In this document: positions 9,003 to 57,967 of the stretch, one piece after another
Numbering within the stretch: position 1 is the stretch's first letter
Layout of the letters: the number at the start of each line of letters is the position of its first letter
Origin: Lytechinus pictus
Taxonomy: Eukaryota
Assembly: GCF_037042905.1 (NCBI RefSeq)
Contig: NC_087254.1
Location: 33,046,001 to 33,110,000, forward strand
DNA length: 64,000 bases
Direction of reading: 5' to 3'
Notes under the pieces: model-generated
What the model saw: the letters and a program-made list of their open reading frames with translations, nothing else
Database searches by the model: none
What the model was told of the DNA's origin: nothing
Program-made: the position numbers and the translations under genes

Positions 9003-10292
9003 TCATTTCATTAGACCTTGTCTTAGAGTGTTGCCAGGCCAGGTACTTGTTGTCTGATGGCGAGGTGATGTGAATTTGGGATTGCTGGAGACCACACCTT
9101 CAAAAGTTGGTTCCCAAATTTGAAGAGGAATTGCAGCAACGTGTTTCTTTTGTTTAGTCCATTTGTCTTTCGATCTCCTCGGCGAATCTGGTGACGACTG
9201 CGAATTATTACCGCTTTTCTTTGTAACCTGATCTTCCTTGCCCTGTCGCCCCCCTCCTCGGATTCCTTCACTATAAGGAGATTGATTAACATGATTCGGA
9301 GCTTCGTAGGAGTCCTTACTCTCGTTTTCTCGTTGTGATGGCACCACGAGGACATTGAAAGATGGAGATTTCTTCTGGGTGGGGGAGAGAATACCTTTAG
9401 TTGGCGACGGCGACGGTGTGTGCGCAGTTCCGACGTCGGGTTCGTAAACACGTTCCCGTAAAAGATTGGTTGTCTTTGAATGTGGTTCGTTGGGAGGGTG
9501 TTTTAACGAGGTGGGTGGTAAAGGAGGGAACCGTGTTTCTGAACCGTTCGACACCTTACTGGTGGTCAGGGGTTTTGGAACAGATTTACCCCCTCTCCGG
9601 GATGTGCTTGAAGGCAGTGATAGAGCTCTCTCAAGTCTACTCTTAGGAAGAGAATCGCAGAGGGAGCTTAAAGTCATTCCTGATAAATCAATCGCTGACG
9701 ATCCACTTTTGCTTCGTTCACGATTCTTTCCATTCGATTTCGATCTCCATTTCTCGATGTAAAGATCCGTCTTTGATCGATGCAACCAAGTCGGCGTCGA
9801 ACCCTCACTCATCGTCTCTCTCGGGTCGGTGAGAGGTAATCGTCGAAGAGCACTCTTGCTCCTCGTCAACCCATGGAACGTCCGTTGTCGGATCACCATG
9901 TATTTGTCGAGTCTCTCATTGATGGATCGCTTAAAGATGTCAGAATCCGAGCTCGACACCGCATTTGAAGCGTTCGGTTTTATCTGCACTCTTGCAACGT
10001 CGACGGCGCAGTGACGCGGTGACCAATCCGAGATCGAGAAGCCGTATGGGTCCCCGGCGTCGTAGACGGTGGATGCTGGCATCACTGTCGGCATGGGGGT
10101 GATGATCTGCTGATCGGGACTCGCCCCCAGAGTCCCTTGATTACCGCTACCAGCCGGTGGAGGGGCATGGTGGTACATGGTCCTGTAGGAAGAGATCGGG
10201 GGTGCCGTGTTGATCGTCTCGACATCATTGGTGTCGGCTGGAGTACCACTGAAATTACTCCATCTAGTTTCCGCCATCGGTCCTCGCGTCAT
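9003..10292 (-). CDS. Gene A: uncharacterised 429-aa disordered Ser/Pro/Arg-rich protein, single coding exon
   Basis: Uninterrupted 1.29-kb ORF, GC- and CpG-rich against an AT-rich background, ATG start. IPLQIWEP motif near the C-terminus. Confidence 0.8.
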   Translation of the reverse strand: MTRGPMAETRWSNFSGTPADTNDVETINTAPPISSYRTMYHHAPPPAGSGNQGTLGASPDQQIITPMPTVMPASTVYDAGDPYGFSISDWSPRHCAVDVARVQIKPNASNAVSSSDSDIFKRSINERLDKYMVIRQRTFHGLTRSKSALRRLPLTDPRETMSEGSTPTWLHRSKTDLYIEKWRSKSNGKNRERSKSGSSAIDLSGMTLSSLCDSLPKSRLERALSLPSSTSRRGGKSVPKPLTTSKVSNGSETRFPPLPPTSLKHPPNEPHSKTTNLLRERVYEPDVGTAHTPSPSPTKGILSPTQKKSPSFNVLVVPSQRENESKDSYEAPNHVNQSPYSEGIRGGGRQGKEDQVTKKSGNNSQSSPDSPRRSKDKWTKQKKHVAAIPLQIWEPTFEGVVSSNPKFTSPRHQTTSTWPGNTLRQGLMK

Positions 10293-12086: not shown

Positions 12087-12268
12087 NNNNNNNNNNNNNN
12101 NNNNNNNNNNNNNNNNNNNNNNNNNNNNNNNNNNNNNNNNNNNNNNNNNNNNNNNNNNNNNNNNNNNNNNNNNNNNNNNNNNNNNNNNNNNNNNNNNNNN
12201 NNNNNNNNNNNNNNNNNNNNNNNNNNNNNNNNNNNNNNNNNNNNNNNNNNNNNNNNNNNNNNNNNNNN
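12087..12268. other. Assembly gap
   Basis: Run of N. Confidence 1.
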
Positions 12269-15851: not shown

Positions 15852-18164
15852 ATGATGGGGCAGAATCGAAAACGATTAACAAATAGACCTCGTTACAATC
15901 CACGGATAGAATCTCCGGATTTTATATTGACCAACTCAGTATCGAACTCCTCTTTCGAATCGACTTCGACTTTGTTTAAAGATCAAAGCAGCGGTGGAGA
16001 ATATCCGACAAAGAAACATCGAGGAAGAAATGAAGCCCTACCGACATCGCGGAAAATCAGGAGTAGGACTAGCGATCCAGCTTCGCGTCAAAAAGACGCA
16101 ATCGAGACGTACATTCGCCGTTATGTGACGTCGGCACCGGAGAACGCCAAGAGGCAGAATCCCGAAGATGATGACACACCGACTGGAACACGGGTTCGTT
16201 TGACTGACAATGTGAGGGTTGTCTTCGACGAAGACCGATATCGAAAATCACTTTCAACATGCACGTCACGCTTGGAATCGTCTATCACAATACGCAATTT
16301 TTCGTCGATCCATCATATCGCGGACCATAAAAGGAATGTCTGCGACGAAATGTTCCGCAACCGGTTTACTAAGACAGGAACGAGAAAAGACGATCAGAAA
16401 TTTGACGCAAAGCGGGTATTGAGTGACGAACTTGGATTTGACAACAGTGATGATAACTACGATGGGAAAATTATTTTGATATCAAAAGCTCTTGGGGACG
16501 GATCAAACGAACTGGAGACTGACAATTATATTCGAACAAGCGAGTGTTTGCATGGTATGACACATCAAGACAAGCGTGTTGATAATTTGTTGGATGAGAT
16601 GAAGAAATCGGACTCTGTAATTGCTAAAAAGGGCAAAAGAAATGCTTCGAAATTTCAGAGAGAATCGTTTAGGATTGAGGGATTGCGTGTTGGGGACTAT
16701 GGGCAATATCACGACGAGTTTGCGAGGGATTTTTCAGACTTCCCTCAACCATGTCAACCACAGCCAATTGAAGAAACCACAGATATGAATTGCATCTCAA
16801 CGATCGATACAGGTTTATCAAACAGTGTGCCAATCAGAAGTGAATCAATTTACATTCAGAATGGTCAACGTAACAAATCTGACGGCTCTCCGAAAGAATC
16901 CGATCTAAATAAGATTTCGTCGTTCAATTCGCCGTTCAAAATTATCGGGACCAATGTAGAATCAAATATGATTACGGAAAGCATTGGACTTGCTTCTAAA
17001 ATGGAAGGAAGTGAGTTTGAAAATATATCAGAGCCCTCCATGAGAATTACGTTGAAGATTCCATCAGCCGAGGACCCTGGTGTCACCGGAAATCGATTTA
17101 GTGGTCATCCCGTGGTTCAAGAAGTTAGTGCCGTGTCACCTGTTGTCGGTGACAGTAGTCTTACAAAGGTCGATCCATGTTTTACTTGTCCGATGTGCGT
17201 CGCCGAGAGAGAGAAGGAAAAAAAACAAATGAGTATTAAGGACGGGTCCTTCATGTTACCAGATTCATTACAAGCCGCTGGTTTGCGTGGTGACGAAGTG
17301 ATGGATTTCAGATCTTCGGGAATCTTTGAGAGCAAGCCATTTCTCCCACCCTCAATCCCAGACGGGGTTGAACTGAAGCGTGTAGATGCGTATGACATCA
17401 CAAGTTTGAGCGGAAACTCAAGGCGCAAACCCGATGACGAAGACAACAAAGAACCTAAAGCAGACTTCAGACTCTCCCTGAAGGATGTTCGGATGGAAAA
17501 ATCGTCACCCACTTTGCCACCACCTGCGAAAACTGATGGAAATTCGTTTCATGTGCAAGGTAATGAACTGCAACCGCAGGACAGATTCTCTTTTGTCTCC
17601 GAATCCCCAATCGCAGGTTTCCCGATGGCACTCGGAAAGCAGTATCCCATTCCAAAATTTCGCCCGAGTCCCATCTACTCCAGTAAGTGGGTTGTGGAAA
17701 ACTCGAGTCCGTCGCGCAGTTCGACCTCTCAGCCATCCTGGAACGGAAACATCACAGGAAAGACAGTAGGTGCTTCCGGTACTCACCAAGATTCGGTCGA
17801 AAATGAAATCATGACTATGAGGATTCCTTTCCTGATTTGGAGAAACAAACAGAAAAAAGAAGGAATATCGAGCATCAAGGACAACTGCAAGGGCAACACC
17901 ATAACCCTGAATCATCGACCGGGAAGCAGCCGGGCAACCAAAGTATCTGGAACAGGCAACCCGAAGAAGCTGACTTTGGCAGAGCAAGCACTGCTGACGC
18001 AGAGAATGGAGAGTGATCGCAAGACCGCGTTCCCTTGCCCTCCGAACAGTCCTGCACCTGAACAGCTAGTCGAACTCGTCAACGATCACTATGAAGAAAG
18101 TGAAGATACTCTATCGCAGTCTCACTTACAAGATTCGAAATTGACAACTGATATTCAAGCTTAG
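15852..18164 (+). CDS. Gene B: uncharacterised 770-aa mostly disordered protein, single coding exon
   Basis: 2.3-kb open frame with ATG in an AAAATG context. Motifs RVVF, CFTCPMC, IPFLIWR and FPCPPNSP. Confidence 0.85.
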   Translation: MMGQNRKRLTNRPRYNPRIESPDFILTNSVSNSSFESTSTLFKDQSSGGEYPTKKHRGRNEALPTSRKIRSRTSDPASRQKDAIETYIRRYVTSAPENAKRQNPEDDDTPTGTRVRLTDNVRVVFDEDRYRKSLSTCTSRLESSITIRNFSSIHHIADHKRNVCDEMFRNRFTKTGTRKDDQKFDAKRVLSDELGFDNSDDNYDGKIILISKALGDGSNELETDNYIRTSECLHGMTHQDKRVDNLLDEMKKSDSVIAKKGKRNASKFQRESFRIEGLRVGDYGQYHDEFARDFSDFPQPCQPQPIEETTDMNCISTIDTGLSNSVPIRSESIYIQNGQRNKSDGSPKESDLNKISSFNSPFKIIGTNVESNMITESIGLASKMEGSEFENISEPSMRITLKIPSAEDPGVTGNRFSGHPVVQEVSAVSPVVGDSSLTKVDPCFTCPMCVAEREKEKKQMSIKDGSFMLPDSLQAAGLRGDEVMDFRSSGIFESKPFLPPSIPDGVELKRVDAYDITSLSGNSRRKPDDEDNKEPKADFRLSLKDVRMEKSSPTLPPPAKTDGNSFHVQGNELQPQDRFSFVSESPIAGFPMALGKQYPIPKFRPSPIYSSKWVVENSSPSRSSTSQPSWNGNITGKTVGASGTHQDSVENEIMTMRIPFLIWRNKQKKEGISSIKDNCKGNTITLNHRPGSSRATKVSGTGNPKKLTLAEQALLTQRMESDRKTAFPCPPNSPAPEQLVELVNDHYEESEDTLSQSHLQDSKLTTDIQA

Positions 18165-22090: not shown

Positions 22091-22238
22091 NNNNNNNNNN
22101 NNNNNNNNNNNNNNNNNNNNNNNNNNNNNNNNNNNNNNNNNNNNNNNNNNNNNNNNNNNNNNNNNNNNNNNNNNNNNNNNNNNNNNNNNNNNNNNNNNNN
22201 NNNNNNNNNNNNNNNNNNNNNNNNNNNNNNNNNNNNNN
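22091..22238. other. Assembly gap
   Basis: Run of N. Confidence 1.
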
Positions 22239-28219: not shown

Positions 28220-28485
28220 CTGATATTATAAATCAAAGATATGGTATGAAATCAGCTCTATAGATAAAAAAAATAATTTCTAATTCAATTCGACCCATAT
28301 AATTTATGACCAGAAAAAAACTTATTCATTCCTTTCAATGTATATAGCAATGTGATACAATTTCTTCTTCTTCTTCAGATTCAGAGATTAATTAATTAAT
28401 TCATTCATTTATTCTTCTTCTTCTTCTTCTTCTCCCCCTTCTCTTCCTCCTCCTCCTTCGGATAAAATACTAAATCATGTCAAAC

Positions 28486-29442
28486 CTTGGTGAGTATAAT
28501 CTCCTGTTTCCCCGAAGACGACCAGGGCTCTCTCTTCTTCGACGTACCTGTTTCCCATCATGTTGTGGATGAACTGAATGCCAGTCTGGCAGATGTTACA
28601 GATCGATGCATGGATGAAATCCCAGATAACAAACATTACAAAGACGGCGAAGATCTTTCCATCGAATACATCAACCCTCTCATTCCTTTCCTCTTCCATT
28701 TGCTCTTCTTCCCTCTCCGCCTCTTCCTCCTCCTCCATCTCATCATCCTCGTCTCCGTCGTCGTCCCCAAAGATGATATATTGGACGACCTGGAGCCCGA
28801 TGTTGAAGATGCTCACAAAAGGGTGGAAGATGATTCCAAAAGGTATGAGGATGCAAATCAAGATGACAAAGATCACTGTCAAGACTTGCGTGAAGAAATC
28901 ATCCTCGTCTTCTTTCTCTGCCTCTTCCCTCTCCTGTCCTTCCTTCTTCTCCTCCTCCTTGTCTTCTTCCTCATCATCTCCCTCTACCTCCTCCCACTCC
29001 TCTTCCTCCTCCTCTTCTTCTTCCTTGTTCTCCTCCTCCTCTTCCTCCATATCATCATCCTCCTGGTCCTCGTCATCGTCCCCGAAGATGATATACTGGA
29101 CGACCTGGAGCCCGGTGTTGAAGATGCTCACAAAAGGGTGGAAGATGATCCCGATAGGTTGGAGGATGCACATCCAGATGGCAAAGATCACTGTCAGGAC
29201 TTGCGTGAAGAAATCCTCCTCCAATTCCTCATCCTCAATGATGGTACCCAGGACGAGTTGGAGTCCGGTTTGATAGAGGCTCCCGAAAGCTTTGAAGATG
29301 TACATCCAGATAAGGAAGATCATTGCAAAGATCTGACTGAAGAAATTGTCAGATTCACGATCCTGTGACGTAGCGTAATCGTCATTGATGACGTCATCTC
29401 CCTCTGAGCCGCATGATGGGTAGCTGCTGTAGGAGGCCTCGT
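28486..29442 (-). CDS. Gene F exon 5: repeated hydrophobic segment plus poly-Glu modules
   Basis: Extends ORF 28475-29323 to acceptor ctaaaaag|AC in phase 1; 957 nt; donor CAAG|GTTTGA; internal duplication with 315-bp period. Confidence 0.8.
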
Positions 29443-34327: not shown

Positions 34328-34638
34328 NNNNNNNNNNNNNNNNNNNNNNNNNNNNNNNNNNNNNNNNNNNNNNNNNNNNNNNNNNNNNNNNNNNNNNNNN
34401 NNNNNNNNNNNNNNNNNNNNNNNNNNNNNNNNNNNNNNNNNNNNNNNNNNNNNNNNNNNNNNNNNNNNNNNNNNNNNNNNNNNNNNNNNNNNNNNNNNNN
34501 NNNNNNNNNNNNNNNNNNNNNNNNNNNNNNNNNNNNNNNNNNNNNNNNNNNNNNNNNNNNNNNNNNNNNNNNNNNNNNNNNNNNNNNNNNNNNNNNNNNN
34601 NNNNNNNNNNNNNNNNNNNNNNNNNNNNNNNNNNNNNN
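34328..34638. other. Assembly gap
   Basis: Run of N. Confidence 1.
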
Positions 34639-37074: not shown

Positions 37075-38268
37075 TCATTGTGCAATGTCTGCGTGACTGG
37101 TGACATCATCCGGCGTATTTGGTGGGCAAAAATGGCCGACGTCAGACGGCTTAAAGTCGTTACACAGTGGGCAATCCCTTTTGTGGCCATGCAATGTTCG
37201 AGTCGAGATTCCTTTGACCGATTCGTAGCCAGATGTATTCGTATTCGACCCACTGGACACCCGTTCTATAGGTAACGACAACGACGCCGTGGATGACGAC
37301 CCATGAAGCTTTTCTAAACGCGCTTGCGTCGCGTCATCGATGATATCGTAAAGACCGTCACTGCGTAAGATGTATTTCGAGCTTGGTTGTGTCGTTGATG
37401 AGGTGATGTTAACAAGATGAGCACAATGAGTTGTTGGAAGGAATTGATCAAAATCAATTGGCGATGGAAGACGACTCTCTGGAGAGGACCCGGTGATGTT
37501 GGTCCCGTTATTGTTCTTCCCTAGTCGCTGAGATAATTGCTGTTTTCGCTTAGAAGCAAGTTTATGAAGAATCACTCTTTCGCGAGGAGATACATTACTC
37601 GGAGTTTTCAAGGGTGCAGAAGGCGAGGGTACGAGAGGCAAGAGTCGCTGTTTCGAAGATTCGACAACCGACATCAACGAGTCCGTCTTGACTTCCGAAG
37701 TCGATGATGAGTGCGGTGTCGAATATTTAAGACAACCGATCGGCCATCGGATTGCGCGAGCCATCCGGGTATTCTCTCTCGCTCTACTATGACTAAATGG
37801 AACGCTCCCAACTTGAAGAGATCCAATGAATGCCGACGTTGGACATTGGTAAAGTGAGCTACTACTCGACTTTACGCTGTGCGCGTCGCATTCCTCTTCC
37901 CTTTGTTCTTGCGTGTGAAACCCGTCACGCAACGGTAGTGTTGGCGCGTTTGTGAGGGACTTGTCATCTTCTCCCTTATTTTTCGACTTCCTTCTTTTCC
38001 CTGGCTTCCAGCATCTCATTCCAGTGCCTTTCAATCGCTTCCAAGAGTCTCTATCCCGTGCCTCGACGGTCAATCCGCACTCTTCGACTCGAATTCTGGG
38101 CAAGAAAGGGGTGTTGTTGTGCGACAACTTCGGCTTAGACGATGACGATGTCCCTTCGCCCCCAACTTCTAAAAGGGACAGTTTGGTGTCCAAATTGCAA
38201 CCACCATAAGCCGATCTCAGTTCCGATTTCATCGCCATTATTCGAAATAATGCATCCAAAGTGACCAT
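37075..38268 (-). CDS. Gene C: uncharacterised 397-aa disordered protein with a C-terminal HxxDCPLC...CPPNTP module
   Basis: 1.19-kb GC/CpG-rich ORF with ATG start; C-terminal motif shared with gene E. Confidence 0.82.
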   Translation of the reverse strand: MVTLDALFRIMAMKSELRSAYGGCNLDTKLSLLEVGGEGTSSSSKPKLSHNNTPFLPRIRVEECGLTVEARDRDSWKRLKGTGMRCWKPGKRRKSKNKGEDDKSLTNAPTLPLRDGFHTQEQREEECDAHSVKSSSSSLYQCPTSAFIGSLQVGSVPFSHSRARENTRMARAIRWPIGCLKYSTPHSSSTSEVKTDSLMSVVESSKQRLLPLVPSPSAPLKTPSNVSPRERVILHKLASKRKQQLSQRLGKNNNGTNITGSSPESRLPSPIDFDQFLPTTHCAHLVNITSSTTQPSSKYILRSDGLYDIIDDATQARLEKLHGSSSTASLSLPIERVSSGSNTNTSGYESVKGISTRTLHGHKRDCPLCNDFKPSDVGHFCPPNTPDDVTSHADIAQ

Positions 38269-41065: not shown

Positions 41066-43249
41066 TTAACAGTTTAAAGTAAAAAAAATGATATAAGATT
41101 GGAAAAAGACAACACATACCGTAAACTGCAAAATCAGAATTTAATGATACTATAAATACTTTTGAATTTAATAAGTCGAATCATAATGGTAGTTCCCAAA
41201 ATTTTGTTAATTTCAATCTAGTATAAAGTTTGGAAAGCTGGCTATTGTCTCATGAAATTAAAGGATTGTTAAATATATTGATGTATATGTGTGTTTGACA
41301 TAAAATTTACCTCTTTCGTTATTCACGACAGTTGGACTTCATGGTGACAACACCTGAATTATTAATTCGATAAATCGATATACATTATTTAGTCCCAACA
41401 ATTGGTGTGTGGTGATATCATTTAATCACTGAATTATTGATTGAATTAGGATTGAATTAGGATATGCTGCATATCATTTGTACGATTATTTGTATTATGG
41501 ATAATTATTCGTCTTTTATGAACAGTGTTTTGTTGATATTGATATTGTAATATTTTGCAATGTACCATTACTTTGATTTTGAACTGAATGATTTAATAAA
41601 TATTATTACAAAACAAAACAAATATTATTGTTCACATTCGTGAAACATTTGTTCGTATTTAGAATGGGGAGTAAATGTCTGGAAAGATTTGGTCCTGGGG
41701 TATAGGTGGAAGGGGGAAGTTGCCCCCCCCCCCCCTCTCGAAATTTTGAAGACATTTTTTCTTACTGAAAACTTTCACAAACATCACGAAAAGTGTCAAT
41801 TTTACTTTAGGAATGCCAAAGCGTTCCCATGACAAACTCGGTCGTTTCGATCGTTGCCTCGCTTTTGAGTTTCTTCGAAAAATTTGTAGTGTTTTGCCCC
41901 CCCCCCTCCCCGGAAAAAAAAAATCTGCTTCACACTCTGAAAAGGGAATACTTTCTTGCACTCTCCTACATTTCCGACTTTCGTCTGTTTGATGAGTTGC
42001 AATTCGAATTAGACTTGAATCTATAAAATTTACACACTAAAGTATATAACAAACAAATTTATGATTGTTGGGTAAACTGCCAAGTACAACGCACTTTAAT
42101 AGATAAATTTTCACACAATTGTCACAGCATTTCAAGTTATTTTAGCAAAATATATATATTGTATGTATTTTTCTATACTCAATGGTGACCAAACCATTTT
42201 TGAGAATGTAGTAGGCCTAGTCCAGCATCTCCCCTCATCAATGTTCTCATAAGAAGACAATAATCTACGATAATTCTCAGTGTCACCAGTAAATAAACAA
42301 AAACCTTACCATTTTTAAGCAGGTTAAGTAATTAAGGCCTGTGTAAATGACAGTTTATGTTTCCCGAAGTTCGAAGATTGCAGCTCTTGAGTTGTCGACT
42401 TACTGCCATCAACTATTTAAGTTCCACGTTTGTAAAGCTTTAAGTGTTACAATTTCATGACAAAGTCGCTGGGATCCCAAGGCAAGACTCGCTGAAATTC
42501 ACAATCATCTGAATATCGATATGTAATAATCATTCTATGTATTAATAGAATCCAATCCACAACATTTTAAGTCTGTTAGATCATAATCCTGTAATTGCAG
42601 TTACCGTTGTACGCGTTGTTAATGCAGTCATTACTAACTACATAAACACCAATCATATTTGATGAACTCAAATCCTTGACACCCGTTGAAATCGATTCAA
42701 TTCAAGGTGTCGCAAAACCATAATATATGCAAATGGGGAAAGGTTACTTGGAGTTGAAAATGAACAGTTCTTCCGATGTAATTGATTTTGTTGCCCAGTT
42801 CGAGTTAGTTAGTTAATGTTGAAGGGAAGATAAAAATGTTTCTATTATCCAGCGACCTTACAACTTCTTAACTCTCGCTCTTGCTCTGCAAACACCATCC
42901 TTTGTTGAGATGGAGAAAGATAATGAGAGAGTCGGAGGTGTGTTGGTACAACGATCGAATGGATGTTATTTGCTCATATGCCTTAGTTTTATTCCAGGTG
43001 TGTGTGGAGAGGAGATTGCGCACTTCGGTGTGGGTCATAGTGCGGCGTACGAGGAATATAAGAGGAATATATTTCATCTAGGAGATGTCCGATTGTTGAT
43101 TTCGACGACGGTGTGCATTTAGGGGAGGAGGGGTGAGAGGAGGAATGAGGAGGAGGGTGAGAGGTGAAGGAATGAGGAGGAAGAGAGGGGGTCATGGGTG
43201 TCTTGATGATAGAGCGACGATTATTTAGATTTAGGGGTTGAAGATCAGG

Positions 43250-43750
43250 TTGACGATAATGATGATGATAACGATGACAATGGTGGTGGTGATAATGACG
43301 ATGCTGTCGAAAATGATGGTGATGATGATGATCATCATCGTGACTATATTGATGGTAGTGATGATGAGGATGGTGACGATGATGGCATTGATGAGGAAGA
43401 ATAGGATTTTGGTGGTCATGGTGTCCAATAATTATATGTTTTGCAAAAATAAACATGATTACTACAATCATAATTATTGACTATTGCGACTGTGTTTGCC
43501 ATGATGATTGTAAGTCTGTATAGTAACCATGAATGATTGAAGAAAATAATGCCTAAGGTAATGACACAAGAAGAATAAAAAAAATTATGATAAAGAAAGG
43601 GAATAACTAGGCCTACCAATGATTGCGAAGGTGGGGGTCATGGTTACAATAATGTCGATGGTTATGCTGGTGATAGTGATGGTGGTAGTGATAATGAAGA
43701 TGATGATAATGGTAACGAATTGGGATTGTGATGATAATCACAATCATCAT
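43250..43750. repeat. (GAT)n-type low-complexity tracts
   Basis: Source of the spurious His- and Met-rich ORFs here. Confidence 0.85.
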
Positions 43751-47131: not shown

Positions 47132-48309
47132 TTAGCATGAAACACCTGCTACGCAAGCCGCACAACCCGATGGACCTTCCGCAGATCTTTGGCTGTAGCT
47201 CAAAATAGGGGGTAATCGAATCGATCGCATATCGATACTAATATTGAGTCGTCTGCCCCGACTCCACACGTAGGATGAGGGACATCCGCTTGTAACATTG
47301 TCTTCAACAGTTTTAGGGATTTCAGGACATTTTTTACCATGTTTCAAGCATTTCGCTGGAGACGTCGAGTCTGCGTATATGCATCCCATTGATCGTCGGC
47401 GCAGCGAAACTGATTTACTGCGGAGAATGTCTTTCAAGGCTGGGCGCCACGAAAATATCGGAATCTCGGAACTCGTCTTCGGCCGTTCGTCAACATTCGG
47501 GTAGTGTTCGATCGTGTCCTGTGCTTTCGCAACTGCTTCGATTTGCTTGTTGAGATAGTCTCCACTTCCGGAAATGACCGAGTCGTTATCATCTTCGACA
47601 GCCTTCGTGCTGAGAGAGGAGGTGACCTCGTATCGTATCCTCGGACCAGTGATCGAGCGAGATGATACGACTGGCAAGCTATCTGAGTCAATCTTTAGTG
47701 TTGGAGGAGAGTAAACTTGGGCTCTTGCGCTTTTGGACCTCGGGATGGGTCTCTCACTGTTCTTATCCTTGTGGGCTTGAGCTGGCACAACATCTTTGCT
47801 ATAGCTTCTTCTATTATGTTGAGTATTAGAGCTCGGTCTCTTGACTGGGGAGGTAACACCGAGTGACTTTGATACTACCATTAACATAGACTCGTCACTT
47901 TTTAAATGTGTATCATCAAGTTCTTGATCGGGTAGTTCTTGTGTCGCTTTCTTATCGCGGCAATTAGGGCATTCGCAAATATCTTCAGACGGGATACTGC
48001 ATTCAGAAAGGACGAACTCATCTTTCTGCATCAAATCCATATTAATCTTTATTGGTACTCCTGTGACCTTTAACCCATCGTGGTACTGTGAACCAATCCG
48101 AACAACCGTCACGCCGGCGCACTTGCTGGTTTGTAACTTCTTCGATGCTTGGACGATAGAGGGCGATATACCACCACGGAGCGATTCGTGCTCGTAATTA
48201 TTATGTGTCTTGAGTTTCCTGACTTCCTGGTAGACGTCAGACTCGGTCATGCGATCAGGGTCTTCGTCTTCTATCCTCCGGTAGTCGATTTCCAGTTCAT
48301 CATCGGTAA
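47132..48309 (-). CDS. Gene D exon 2; spliced product about 500 aa, disordered, with CECPNC, IPIFSWRP, RLPPI and a Cys-rich C-terminus
   Basis: Acceptor ttttttttcag|TT at 48309, phase 1, runs in frame into ORF 47132-48250 (FTDDELEIDYRRIEDEDPDRMTES...). Confidence 0.82.
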
Positions 48310-52425: not shown

Positions 52426-52560
52426 NNNNNNNNNNNNNNNNNNNNNNNNNNNNNNNNNNNNNNNNNNNNNNNNNNNNNNNNNNNNNNNNNNNNNNNNNNN
52501 NNNNNNNNNNNNNNNNNNNNNNNNNNNNNNNNNNNNNNNNNNNNNNNNNNNNNNNNNNNN
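52426..52560. other. Assembly gap
   Basis: Run of N. Confidence 1.
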
Positions 52561-54914: not shown

Positions 54915-56561
54915 TTAGAAGTCTGAATAAAACCGTTCAACCGGATAAAATCCGTAATCCTTTTTCATAAACGATGTGGGGCTGTTAGGAGGGCAGATAC
55001 CGCCTCCCGGTGTACTTTTGAAGAAATTACAGAGCGGGCAATCGAGACTATGCGACGGTACGATCACGGGGGCGAGTTGAGATGGACTACCGTACACGAA
55101 GACAGTATTAGACGTCATGAACCGGTTTTCCGGCCAGATGACGTGGGGGTGAGCGGGTTGCAACTTTTTCATGACGGACTCGGCGATGTCGTCACCATGT
55201 GTATGGTCTTTATTGGAAAGATTTCCGTTCATGTCTTTCAGCATGGCGCTGCTGTGTTTCATTGTCTTGCGTCTGTTTTTGGCAGCGCTGACGCATCTGT
55301 CTCCCTCATCGTTGCTTAAAGCTCCTTCGGAGAGTTCGGGCGTGGCGATTTCACTTCGCATCGGCATCTTTCTCTCGTCAGTTTCGGAACTCGTCGGCCG
55401 CGTCGTGCAAGCGATCGTGTCCGAGTTATAACCACATTCGTTTCCCTCCCAACGAACTCGATGTTCTTTTGAGTTGCAGCTGTCACTGTCTTTGTCACCG
55501 CTATAATTGTCATCATCTTCGAGTCGTGCGAGGATGACATCTTCCAAGGTTGCAGTACTTAAATCAACATCGACGTCGATCGGTTTATTTTCGACACGTG
55601 GTAATCGAAAAAACGCTGACCTAGTTGGTCGCTCCGTTTCTTCAATTTCCTTCGTTGGTTTTCTTTCATTTGCTGGTGGCAGCTTATCCTGATTTCTTAC
55701 TTTCTTTCTTTTTGCATTGTCATCACTGTCGTTTGACGACACCGACGATGTCGCTACCTTGACACTGGCCTTACCTCTTATCATTCCCTCGCTATCACCC
55801 CAACTGACTGAGTCTACTTTCGATGTCGAACATCGCTGTCTCCGCTCACTTTTCGTCGCTGGTTTGTTCGATTTCGCCCGATCAGCAACTGGTGCCGACA
55901 ATGACTTCCTATGTTTCTGCAAGTTTTTCACCATATCTACCCTGCTGTAGCTTTTCCCTCTAACTCCTTGAATCCCATCCATTGCATCTTGCTGTTTGGC
56001 CGACTCCTCTTCGTTCCCCGAATCTTTCCGACTGCCCGACGGAGATGACCGAGACGATTTCGTCGATGACGTATCACTCTGCTTCGGTTCGGTAATTTTC
56101 GGCAGCTGTAGATCCTCCTGATTCCCCGCTGGTGCGGTCGAATGCTTGGGTGGGTTAACTATTCCAGCATCCTTCCACATCTCTTCCATCACTTCATTCG
56201 CCGTTTTCGTCAGCATCTCCAGTTGCTTGTCACTCACCCTCCCTAGAGGCCGAAAATCGACCCTCCGCTCAAGCGACGATAAACGCCTGCAATGTTGATA
56301 CTGATCGGACCGCGTTTGGCTGACATTCCGACTCTGCTGCCGCGACTGTCTCTCCGATGCGTTCGAATGTTTTTGATTGACGGCACTGCGACGTTTAATC
56401 GACGTCGACGCTCGCCACTCCTTCTTATATCTGATACTGGTGACCGTTCTTTCGACTGCTGAGAGGGCGATTCGAGCAGGGGGGTGTGAGAACGGGGTGG
56501 TAGCGAGCAAGGTCGCTGGCATCACCTCCATCATTGAGTCTAATCTATAATCTTGCTTCAT
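54915..56561 (-). CDS. Gene E: uncharacterised 548-aa disordered protein with a C-terminal HxxDCPLC...CPPNSP module
   Basis: The listed ORF starts at TTG; the first ATG is 56561 (MKQDYRL). In-frame stop at 56598-56600; 5'UTR acceptor tttttcgcag| at 56650. Confidence 0.85.
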   Translation of the reverse strand: MKQDYRLDSMMEVMPATLLATTPFSHPPARIALSAVERTVTSIRYKKEWRASTSIKRRSAVNQKHSNASERQSRQQSRNVSQTRSDQYQHCRRLSSLERRVDFRPLGRVSDKQLEMLTKTANEVMEEMWKDAGIVNPPKHSTAPAGNQEDLQLPKITEPKQSDTSSTKSSRSSPSGSRKDSGNEEESAKQQDAMDGIQGVRGKSYSRVDMVKNLQKHRKSLSAPVADRAKSNKPATKSERRQRCSTSKVDSVSWGDSEGMIRGKASVKVATSSVSSNDSDDNAKRKKVRNQDKLPPANERKPTKEIEETERPTRSAFFRLPRVENKPIDVDVDLSTATLEDVILARLEDDDNYSGDKDSDSCNSKEHRVRWEGNECGYNSDTIACTTRPTSSETDERKMPMRSEIATPELSEGALSNDEGDRCVSAAKNRRKTMKHSSAMLKDMNGNLSNKDHTHGDDIAESVMKKLQPAHPHVIWPENRFMTSNTVFVYGSPSQLAPVIVPSHSLDCPLCNFFKSTPGGGICPPNSPTSFMKKDYGFYPVERFYSDF

Positions 56562-57967
56562 CCAAAGTTTGCTTTCAGTCAAGTCTGAAGACGGTTTTCA
56601 TTCTGAGTTGATGAGATCTTCCTCCCTAGGGTCAATTCATTTACATCCATCTGCGAAAAAGTGAAAAGAGGAATTTTGTATTTAATACGAATCAAAATCA
56701 GAATAAATCAACAAAAAAACCAAATCACCCAAACTTAGGAGCTCGAGTAACTCGAATTTGGTTCATAAATCTTCAAGTCATTGCGATTTTTTAAAAGATA
56801 CTATTGCAGGCTGTTAAAATGGTGTAATCTGATTTATCAACATAAAATTTGTCATAAAATTTGAGCATTTATTTTTATCCGTAATAATAAGTCAATGGCT
56901 TTCACAATGAAATACTATGCATTGCTATAACGTGTATTATTTAGTCTACGTCATAAATTATGTGAAAGAATTCCAAACTAATATTCACAGGAGATAAAAA
57001 TCCGGAAAAATGAAAAACAATCAATAGCAAAATTGTATGAATTATGGTACCAATTATCGATATCAAGAGAAGTCTGTTCATTTATCATTAGTTTCAACGT
57101 CAATGTATGAATGACTTTGAATATAATGTTTCCCCGTAACCCCACCAACAGTGGTTCAATCAATAATGAACGAAATATTTTGAACTCATTGTCTACTGAA
57201 ATCAATATCTGTTAAGATATCAAAATCATACTAACAGTAATCCATTTTTAAATGCAATTATAATGCGTAAATTCCCGTGCATACAAATATAGCCTGATTC
57301 AGATTTTGTCAGCAAACAATTTCTATCACCTCGTATCAATTTGTATCAACAGGTATACTACATGCATGATTGGCACTGAAAGTTTGTATTGATGTATTTA
57401 TTTATTCCTCCATTCTGAATGAAATCTCTCCTAGGGCGTGGATATAATGACCAACAATATTTACCCCCTTGGAGTGACGAACGATATACTTTGGACAAAA
57501 GATTGTTAGGATTAGTTTCAAATTGGCTTGTAAATGAGAAACCGTTGTACGTCGAATAAAAAAAAGCAAAATAAAAAAGTGTATTTTTTCTTGTGTGATC
57601 ATGGAGTGTCAATGTTTAACTGAATTTTACGTTCGAAGTTACCCATGCACTAACATGAACATCGCTCTAGACTCGGACCAAAATAATAAATTTCTAAAGA
57701 TGTCATTCTTTTATAGCTATTCCTGGTATTCGTGTCATCATTATCATAAATATTGTGTTAGATATTTTTCAGGTTAAACAGAACAGTACAGGCATTGTCA
57801 GTAACTTGCTTTCAGTGCTCATCAGCTTTATGATGATCCATAATTTTATGTAGGAACAGTTTTGCCATTTTTTTTATTTGATTCATTGTTAAGGAAAATA
57901 TTGTTTAAGGAGATTAAGAACCCCTTTCGGTGTCATATTCGGTGTCATTCAGTGTCAGTATTGCAAA

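Follow-up and report, generated by a model that had tools for sequence, protein, structure and literature searches.

In a stretch of 64,000 nucleotides from the sea urchin Lytechinus pictus (NCBI RefSeq assembly GCF_037042905.1, contig NC_087254.1, positions 33,046,001 to 33,110,000 of the forward strand; this whole stretch is hereafter termed the window), two intronless genes, designated C and E, encode a 25-residue His/Cys module that ends in a C-P-P-N-[S/T]-P core. This module is retained by orthologues of both genes in echinoids, asteroids, an ophiuroid and holothurians and, judging from profile searches of known families and structures, belongs to no described family. Comparison of its copies suggests, tentatively and at somewhat less than even confidence, an ancient mini-module of intronless, largely disordered paralogues, in which a metal-held knuckle would present a proline-directed S/T-P docking or phosphorylation site.

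The shared module of genes C and E

An earlier note on this DNA had reported a gapless match between the C-termini of the two proteins, had proposed a zinc site made of one His and three Cys (HCCC) and had taken the match as evidence of paralogy. Re-analysis confirmed both 25-mers at their coordinates, with 15 of the 25 residues identical, no gaps and the common pattern HxxxCPxC-x11-CPPN[S/T]P. The coding strand is minus; plus-strand reading of both intervals yielded unrelated peptides. The features concerned are:

37075-38268 (-), open reading frame (ORF) of gene C: single exon, 397 amino acids (aa), mainly polar and of low complexity
37111-37185 (-), module in gene C: aa 362-386, H-x3-CPLC-x11-CPPNTP, matched by the module hidden Markov model (HMM) at E=3.7e-15
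54915-56582 (-), ORF of gene E: single exon, 555 aa
54978-55052 (-), module in gene E: aa 511-535, H-x3-CPLC-x11-CPPNSP, matched by the module HMM at E=1.2e-15

The minus-strand translation of the module is HKRDCPLCNDFKPSDVGHFCPPNTP in gene C and HSLDCPLCNFFKSTPGGGICPPNSP in gene E. The 397-aa product of gene C is identical to an existing protein record (P0001), while that of gene E shows 96% identity to a Lytechinus variegatus protein and probably begins at the ATG at 56559-56561, as in the L. variegatus model. By its encoded proteins, the window belongs to a camarodont sea urchin near Lytechinus.

By its alignment statistics and its codons, the C-E module match is neither a chance similarity nor the product of recent gene conversion. 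BLASTP of C against E gave E=1e-7 with the module as the sole aligning segment, and a profile-profile comparison of six C-family proteins with eight E-family proteins likewise aligned the module alone (35 columns, probability 97%, E=8e-11). The six-frame expectation of CPPN[ST]P in the window is 0.0012, with no occurrence in 200 shuffles, against three observed copies, all of which lie near the C-terminus of a long ORF. The coding sequences of the two modules agree at 42 of 75 nucleotides, and different codons are used at 10 of the 15 shared residues; the similarity is therefore maintained by selection on the protein rather than by recent gene conversion.

The description of both modules as C-terminal holds for C and E themselves, in which 11 and 20 residues, respectively, separate the module from the stop, but fails as a family rule, since other carriers have tails of 51-119 residues past the module. 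Similarly, the reported lack of similarity in the flanks is borne out between C and E but not within the E family, where the module is embedded in a conserved C-terminal domain of ~80 residues with the pattern PHVIWP..YGSPS..VPSH-module-T..K.YGFYPVER. In the C family, unlike the E family, the module stands by itself, and the best-conserved stretch of gene C is not the module but an N-terminal motif, LPRIRVEECGLTVE, which has no counterpart in E. These two regions are located as follows:

54927-55157 (-), extended C-terminal domain of the E family: aa 476-552, with the module in its middle
38035-38109 (-), N-terminal motif of the C family, PFLPRIRVEECGLTVEARDRDSWKR: aa 54-78, window identity of 0.85 in alignment A1

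Of the columns in the E-family alignment (A2), 46 are invariant, nearly all of them in the C-terminal domain, where column identity reaches 0.76-0.90 as against ~0.5 elsewhere. The N-terminal motif of the C family is kept from urchin to brittle star and includes an invariant Cys.

Anatomy and conservation of the module

A table of 23 non-redundant copies from three protein families yields the consensus H-x(3-4)-C-P-x-C-x2-[FY]-x5-[GT]-x2-C-P-P-N-[ST]-P, the three Cys of which are hereafter C1, C2 and C3. The segment C1-P-x-C2-x11-C3-P-P-N-[ST]-P is free of insertions and deletions (indels) in all 23 copies, even though its 11 spacer residues vary in identity. Invariant throughout are the Pro after C1, C3 itself, the two Pro that follow it, the Asn at C3+3 and the last Pro, so that the sole variable position of CPPNxP is the one occupied by Ser or Thr. 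Nearly all copies have an aromatic residue at C2+3 (in P0021 it stands at +4), and the residue at C3-3 is Gly in echinoderms and Thr in molluscs. The C1-P dipeptide is present in 22 copies and C3-P in all 23, the Pro being retained even without C1. Furthermore, PN[ST]P agrees with the consensus P-x-[ST]-P in every copy of the module as well as in both orthologues of a third gene of the window, gene B, described below.

The putative ligands are less uniform. The complete set of H, C, C and C occurs in 19 of the 23 copies; a His is found within five residues before C1 in every copy. Its position is -4 in 18 of the 19 copies from echinoderms, whereas the C orthologue of Diadema and the mollusc-type proteins have it at -5 and/or -1. 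In the Diadema C orthologue, C1 is replaced by Arg, as confirmed by the genomic codon cgc, whereas C2 is replaced by Ala in P0004 and by Ser in both sea-cucumber E orthologues (P0013 and P0014). Among the Cys of alignment A2, invariance is confined to C515 and C530, C518 being replaced in the sea-cucumber protein P0013. Each C or E protein contains 9-10 Cys, three of them in the module. The proposal of an HCCC zinc site is thus partly supported, being neither established nor cleanly refuted: the spacing C1-x2-C2-x11-C3 is kept, as are the aromatic residue and a His close by, but one ligand is lost in four copies (C1 or C2 in each case) and the His shifts; a lack of His and Cys conservation, named beforehand as the refuting outcome, was seen in part.

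A C orthologue from a related urchin (P0002; L005 1270-1297) lacks the 45 nucleotides between the first and third Cys codons and runs into an early stop (..KDCCPHPP, then stop). This apparent loss of the module was set aside as unreliable, as it lies 10 nucleotides from the end of a 1.3-kb read-assembly contig and may be an artefact or a real loss.

Gene B and the conserved gene cluster

A third member of the cluster, gene B, contains parts of the module at separate sites:

15852-18164 (+), ORF of gene B: single exon, 770 aa
17178-17198 (+), C-x2-C-P-M-C knuckle: aa 443-449, ~285 residues upstream of CPPNSP
18036-18053 (+), CPPNSP core: aa 729-734, 36 residues before the stop

The gene B orthologue of the starfish Asterias (L002:16654-18600, minus strand) has an overall identity of 23% and keeps both islands, CSMCPMC and CPPNTP.PE; the module HMM gives two half-matches on it, in the right order. 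The retention of both the CPMC knuckle and CPPN[ST]P in urchin and starfish B, at a distance of ~285 residues, suggests that the two halves of the module have been kept together in this gene.

The arrangement of the genes was compared among three species:

Window (Lytechinus pictus): B(+), C(-), E(-); spacing 18.9 kb and 16.6 kb
Asterias rubens, one chromosome-scale record: B(+), C(-), E(+); spacing 5.6 kb and 14.6 kb
Diadema: E, D, C; relative order and strands match the window

Sea urchins and starfish represent echinoderm classes that diverged very long ago, and the B-C-E synteny in Asterias indicates that the cluster is older than their split. The same synteny supports the paralogy of C and E and extends it to B. 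The module is a good marker of paralogy, as had been claimed earlier, and the CPPNSP core of gene B, together with the order of B, C and E in Asterias and of E, D and C in Diadema, carries that claim further: three unrelated-looking neighbour genes are ancient paralogues that were kept together in sea urchins and starfish.

Distribution across taxa

Orthologues of gene C were identified in Diadema, Patiria, Acanthaster, Asterias and the brittle star Amphiura, and those of gene E in L. variegatus, S. purpuratus, Diadema, Asterias and Holothuria, among others; the ORFs are conserved with the same ends across several echinoderm classes. When 1.84 billion representative proteins were searched exhaustively with an HMM of the module plus the E domain (cut-off E<=0.001), only 15 carriers were returned, the named ones being echinoderm except for a protein of the limpet Patella caerulea, whose relatives include Lottia gigantea. 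No vertebrate or arthropod protein reached significance in this search. The mollusc proteins match the E family over 63 columns (E=2.6e-11) and have the N-terminal RPLG motif in common with it, whereas their match to the C family covers the 27-residue module alone. Owing to this closer relation of the mollusc proteins to E, the E type looks like the older form.

In Patella caerulea, a gene with a Pfam match to TEX33 (testis-expressed 33; L003 1-3444) lies near the E-like gene, its called range ending ~6.6 kb upstream with one called gene between. This neighbour may hint at germ-line expression of the neighbourhood.

Comparison with known families and structures

The statement that the module is not a named domain was upheld. 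The whole C and E proteins matched no Pfam family at E<=1, and the excised modules scored at best 12-16 bits against cut-offs of 20-27, the sub-threshold matches being to zinc knuckles (zf-Tbcl_FmdE, zf-BED and Zn ribbons). Searches of all Protein Data Bank (PDB) sequences with two profiles returned nothing below E=0.17; the best match, at that value, joins VPSHSLDCPLC to ANHSLDCPIC of NDUFS1 and covers one knuckle. A search of the literature on the motif strings, the gene identifiers and DUF4722 found nothing relevant.

The only families with even weak matches to the module are the CPxC zinc knuckles found in zinc ribbons and treble clefs (such as zf-Tbcl_FmdE, PF23475, and the ribosomal protein bL32), which it resembles in its C-P-x-C, the aromatic residue that follows and the Cys-Pro about a dozen residues on. 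In contrast to these knuckles, the second half of the module has one Cys, within C-P-P-N, where Asn takes the place of a Cys; the fourth ligand would need to be the upstream His, and the scores stay below the cut-offs as given above. The A20-type zinc finger, with the pattern C-x2-4-C-x11-C-x2-C, shows equal C-x2-C-x11-C spacing and a similar Gly and hydrophobic residue before its third Cys, but was rejected because position C3+3 is the invariant Asn rather than a fourth Cys and zf-A20 matched none of the 23 members.

Likeness to cofactor-binding sites is confined to parts of the module. In NDUFS1/NuoG and [FeFe] hydrogenases, the 4Fe-4S site with His(Cys)3 ligation follows the pattern H-x3-C-x2-C-x5-C, and the NDUFS1 region of the local match carries this ligand pattern. 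The first half of the module, H-S-[LV]-D-C-P-x-C, nearly equals NHSLDCPIC, although the module sits in a disordered tail and not in a ferredoxin-like domain. Assignment to NADH-G_4Fe-4S_3 was rejected: echinoderm copies agree with it at the first three ligands, but the final Cys of the module follows at x11 instead of x5, and there is no Pfam match. Heme regulatory motifs (Bach1, HAP1, Rev-erb, IRP2) are defined by a Cys-Pro dipeptide, of which the module has two, along with a nearby His and a disordered host protein; this feature is weak, very common and no proof of heme binding, and heme regulatory motifs, unlike the module, have neither a fixed partner spacing nor PPN[ST]P.

The C-terminal core resembles the site of proline-directed kinases of the mitogen-activated protein kinase (MAPK) and cyclin-dependent kinase (CDK) type, the consensus of which is P-x-S/T-P: P-N-[S/T]-P fits it in every copy, with S/T as the sole variation. 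Unlike ordinary phosphosites, it lies in a six-residue invariant block beside a Cys/His knuckle. Apart from these, residues 389-445 of P0021 weakly match profile positions 98-155 of DUF4722 (PF15849), but membership was rejected at 13.6-14.1 bits against a cut-off of 27 in one of the 23 members, and the match is a lead only. The N-glycosylation sequon was also discarded, as N-[ST]-P does not match N-x-[ST], and inspection of the flanks by eye revealed no fit to the docking consensus of PP1, calcineurin, B56 or SIAH.

A putative metal-held knuckle and its alternatives

In the proposed mechanism, the CPxC knuckle together with C3 and the His close by would clasp one metal ion, most likely Zn2+, and thereby close a rigid loop of 15 residues that packs against the conserved aromatic residue. 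At the tip of this loop, the invariant P-P-N-[S/T]-P would be offered to a partner for docking, and its S/T-P, placed in the optimal P-x-S/T-P context of MAPK/CDK-type kinases, could serve as a phosphorylation switch. A zinc-type knuckle with His, C1, C2 and C3 as ligands may tolerate the loss of one of them, while the disordered remainder of each paralogue would bear its own family-specific motifs. Invariant spacing, retention of the aromatic residue and a clustering of Cys and His within polar proteins that elsewhere contain few Cys resemble a small metal-held loop rather than independent linear motifs in a disordered tail, and the sub-threshold Pfam matches to zinc knuckles count in favour of the same reading; in particular, the absence of any indel in 23 copies favours a small folded, metal-held unit, and the restriction of variation within CPPNxP to Ser or Thr is as expected of a phospho-acceptor. 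Since single ligands have been lost while CPPN[ST]P is invariant, and occurs alone in gene B, the most constrained part of the module appears to be a recognition surface rather than the ligand set.

Several observations weigh against a metal-held knuckle. A putative ligand is absent from 4 of the 23 copies with the rest of the module retained, and thus its function cannot strictly need four-ligand coordination; the distance from the His to C1 is not fixed. The CPPN[ST]P of gene B stands alone, far from any CPxC, and may work as an independent linear motif, and a zinc site alone leaves the invariant CPPN[S/T]P unexplained. Moreover, AlphaFold2 gave no confident fold for the C-terminal domain of E (mean predicted local distance difference test, pLDDT, of 47.4 and 49.8, with 40-48 in the module) from shallow alignments of 13 and then 23 sequences, by a method that models no metal.

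The chief alternative is free of metal and regards the module as part of a disordered tail in which two short linear motifs, CPxC-aromatic and CPPN[S/T]P, adjoin each other, with the Cys acting as contacts instead of ligands; candidate partners would be a kinase, a phosphatase, a prolyl isomerase, a WW- or SH3-type domain or an E3 ligase. Held here as a real but doubtful possibility, it agrees well with the invariance of CPPN[ST]P in all module copies and in both B orthologues when either Cys of the CxxC can be lost, with the lone core near the C-terminus of gene B, with the lack of a predicted fold and with host proteins that are polar, of low complexity and provided with short conserved islands. 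Nevertheless, linkers between independent linear motifs usually drift in length, and the families bearing the module are separated by hundreds of millions of years; the absence of indels over the 21 residues from C1 to the final Pro, in families that are otherwise unalignable, speaks for a single unit, and the conserved aromatic residue, the Gly/Thr and the nearby His resemble a mini-fold. To our knowledge, no catalogued linear motif matches CPPN[ST]P (ELM was not searched), and this was likewise counted against two linear motifs. A cofactor or redox sensor, whether built on Cys-Pro heme regulatory motifs with an axial His, on an Fe-S cluster or on a reversible CPxC disulfide, is improbable. 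An invariant Pro does follow both the C1 and the C3 position, VPSHSLDCPLC gives its local match to NDUFS1, and CPYC, CPMC and CPLC resemble the CxxC of thiol oxidoreductases, with one member weakly matching Thioredoxin_4 (E=0.21); yet the NDUFS1 match (E=0.17) spans a single knuckle and places the fourth ligand 11 residues off instead of 5, none of the cofactor families of Pfam, Fe-S and thioredoxin among them, rose above threshold, and the invariant PN[ST]P and the fixed 11-residue spacer are explained no better than by zinc.

The origin of the match has its own alternatives. The failure of the C and E families to align anywhere outside the module, even by profiles, would be expected if they were not paralogues and had acquired the module independently, through convergence, transfer of a short segment or gene conversion. 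Such an origin is considered very improbable, because a match of 25-35 residues with equal spacing (E=8e-11) is not what convergence produces, saturated synonymous sites leave no room for recent conversion, and both families were already distinct and linked in the urchin-starfish ancestor; in addition, the three carriers are intronless neighbours, and disordered proteins quickly lose alignable signal. A chance match in non-coding ORFs has nothing but the shortness of the match in its favour and carries a negligible probability: it is refuted by the orthologous ORFs, which keep the same ends in several echinoderm classes, by the profile match, by the HMM search and by the shuffles, with a chance expectation of 0.0012 cores per window.

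Significance

The module gives a first point of access to a group of uncharacterised proteins from echinoderms and molluscs, for which database labels are either missing or spurious (the S. purpuratus E orthologue, for example, is labelled as TFIID subunit 11-like). With regard to the metal-held knuckle, it is conceivable, if rather unlikely, that a new metal-binding mini-domain, dating at least from the echinoderm-mollusc ancestor, ties a proline-directed phospho-switch to the metal or redox state; the mini-domain would then mark a hidden family of disordered regulatory proteins whose cluster has been kept since the urchin-starfish ancestor and which is without a recognisable vertebrate counterpart. 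As a small and easily synthesised peptide, the module lends itself to direct testing as a new metal-binding or phospho-switch motif, and Lytechinus and other sea urchins are tractable for knock-down and expression studies. Even a linear docking motif only would be a clean case of a short motif outliving the divergence of the disordered protein around it.

Neighbouring genes and other features of the window

Genes A and D were considered as members of the module family and rejected on present evidence, the profile comparisons not being significant. Gene D (47132-48250, minus strand) is retained in Diadema between E and C (L007 18854-19407, tblastn E=4e-12); it is without the module, and nothing in the Diadema locus L007 corresponds to its CECPNC knuckle (window 47960-47971), although the rest of D is conserved there. 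Gene A (9003-10292, minus strand) ends in IPLQIWEP...FTSP, with spacing equal to that of HPHVIWPEN...YGSP in gene E (55130-55157, minus strand), and gene B of both urchin and starfish has [IV]P[FL]LIW (at aa ~657-665 of the window gene). The resemblance of A, B and E in P-x-x-I-W may represent another common motif, but the profile comparisons were not significant (hhalign probability <=4%). The Asterias cluster holds two more intronless ORFs (L002 2253-3533 and L001 15821-16912, of 426 and 363 aa), one between C and E and the other beyond E; no counterpart of these ORFs, X and Y, was detected in the window.

Elsewhere in the window, a minus-strand ORF at 28475-29323 (282 aa) encodes repeated hydrophobic hairpins between long poly-Asp/Glu linkers and is overlapped by the antisense ORFs 28487-29368 and 28578-29273 (plus strand); its Pfam matches are sub-threshold, the best being a ZIP transporter at 24 bits against a cut-off of 35. 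Another minus-strand ORF, at 42989-43471 (160 aa), has no Pfam match and is very rich in His, with runs of H, Y, R and P. The G+C content of the window is ~36%, and its four runs of N (12087-12268, 22091-22238, 34328-34638 and 52426-52560, of 182, 148, 311 and 135 nucleotides, respectively) leave genes B, C and E untouched.

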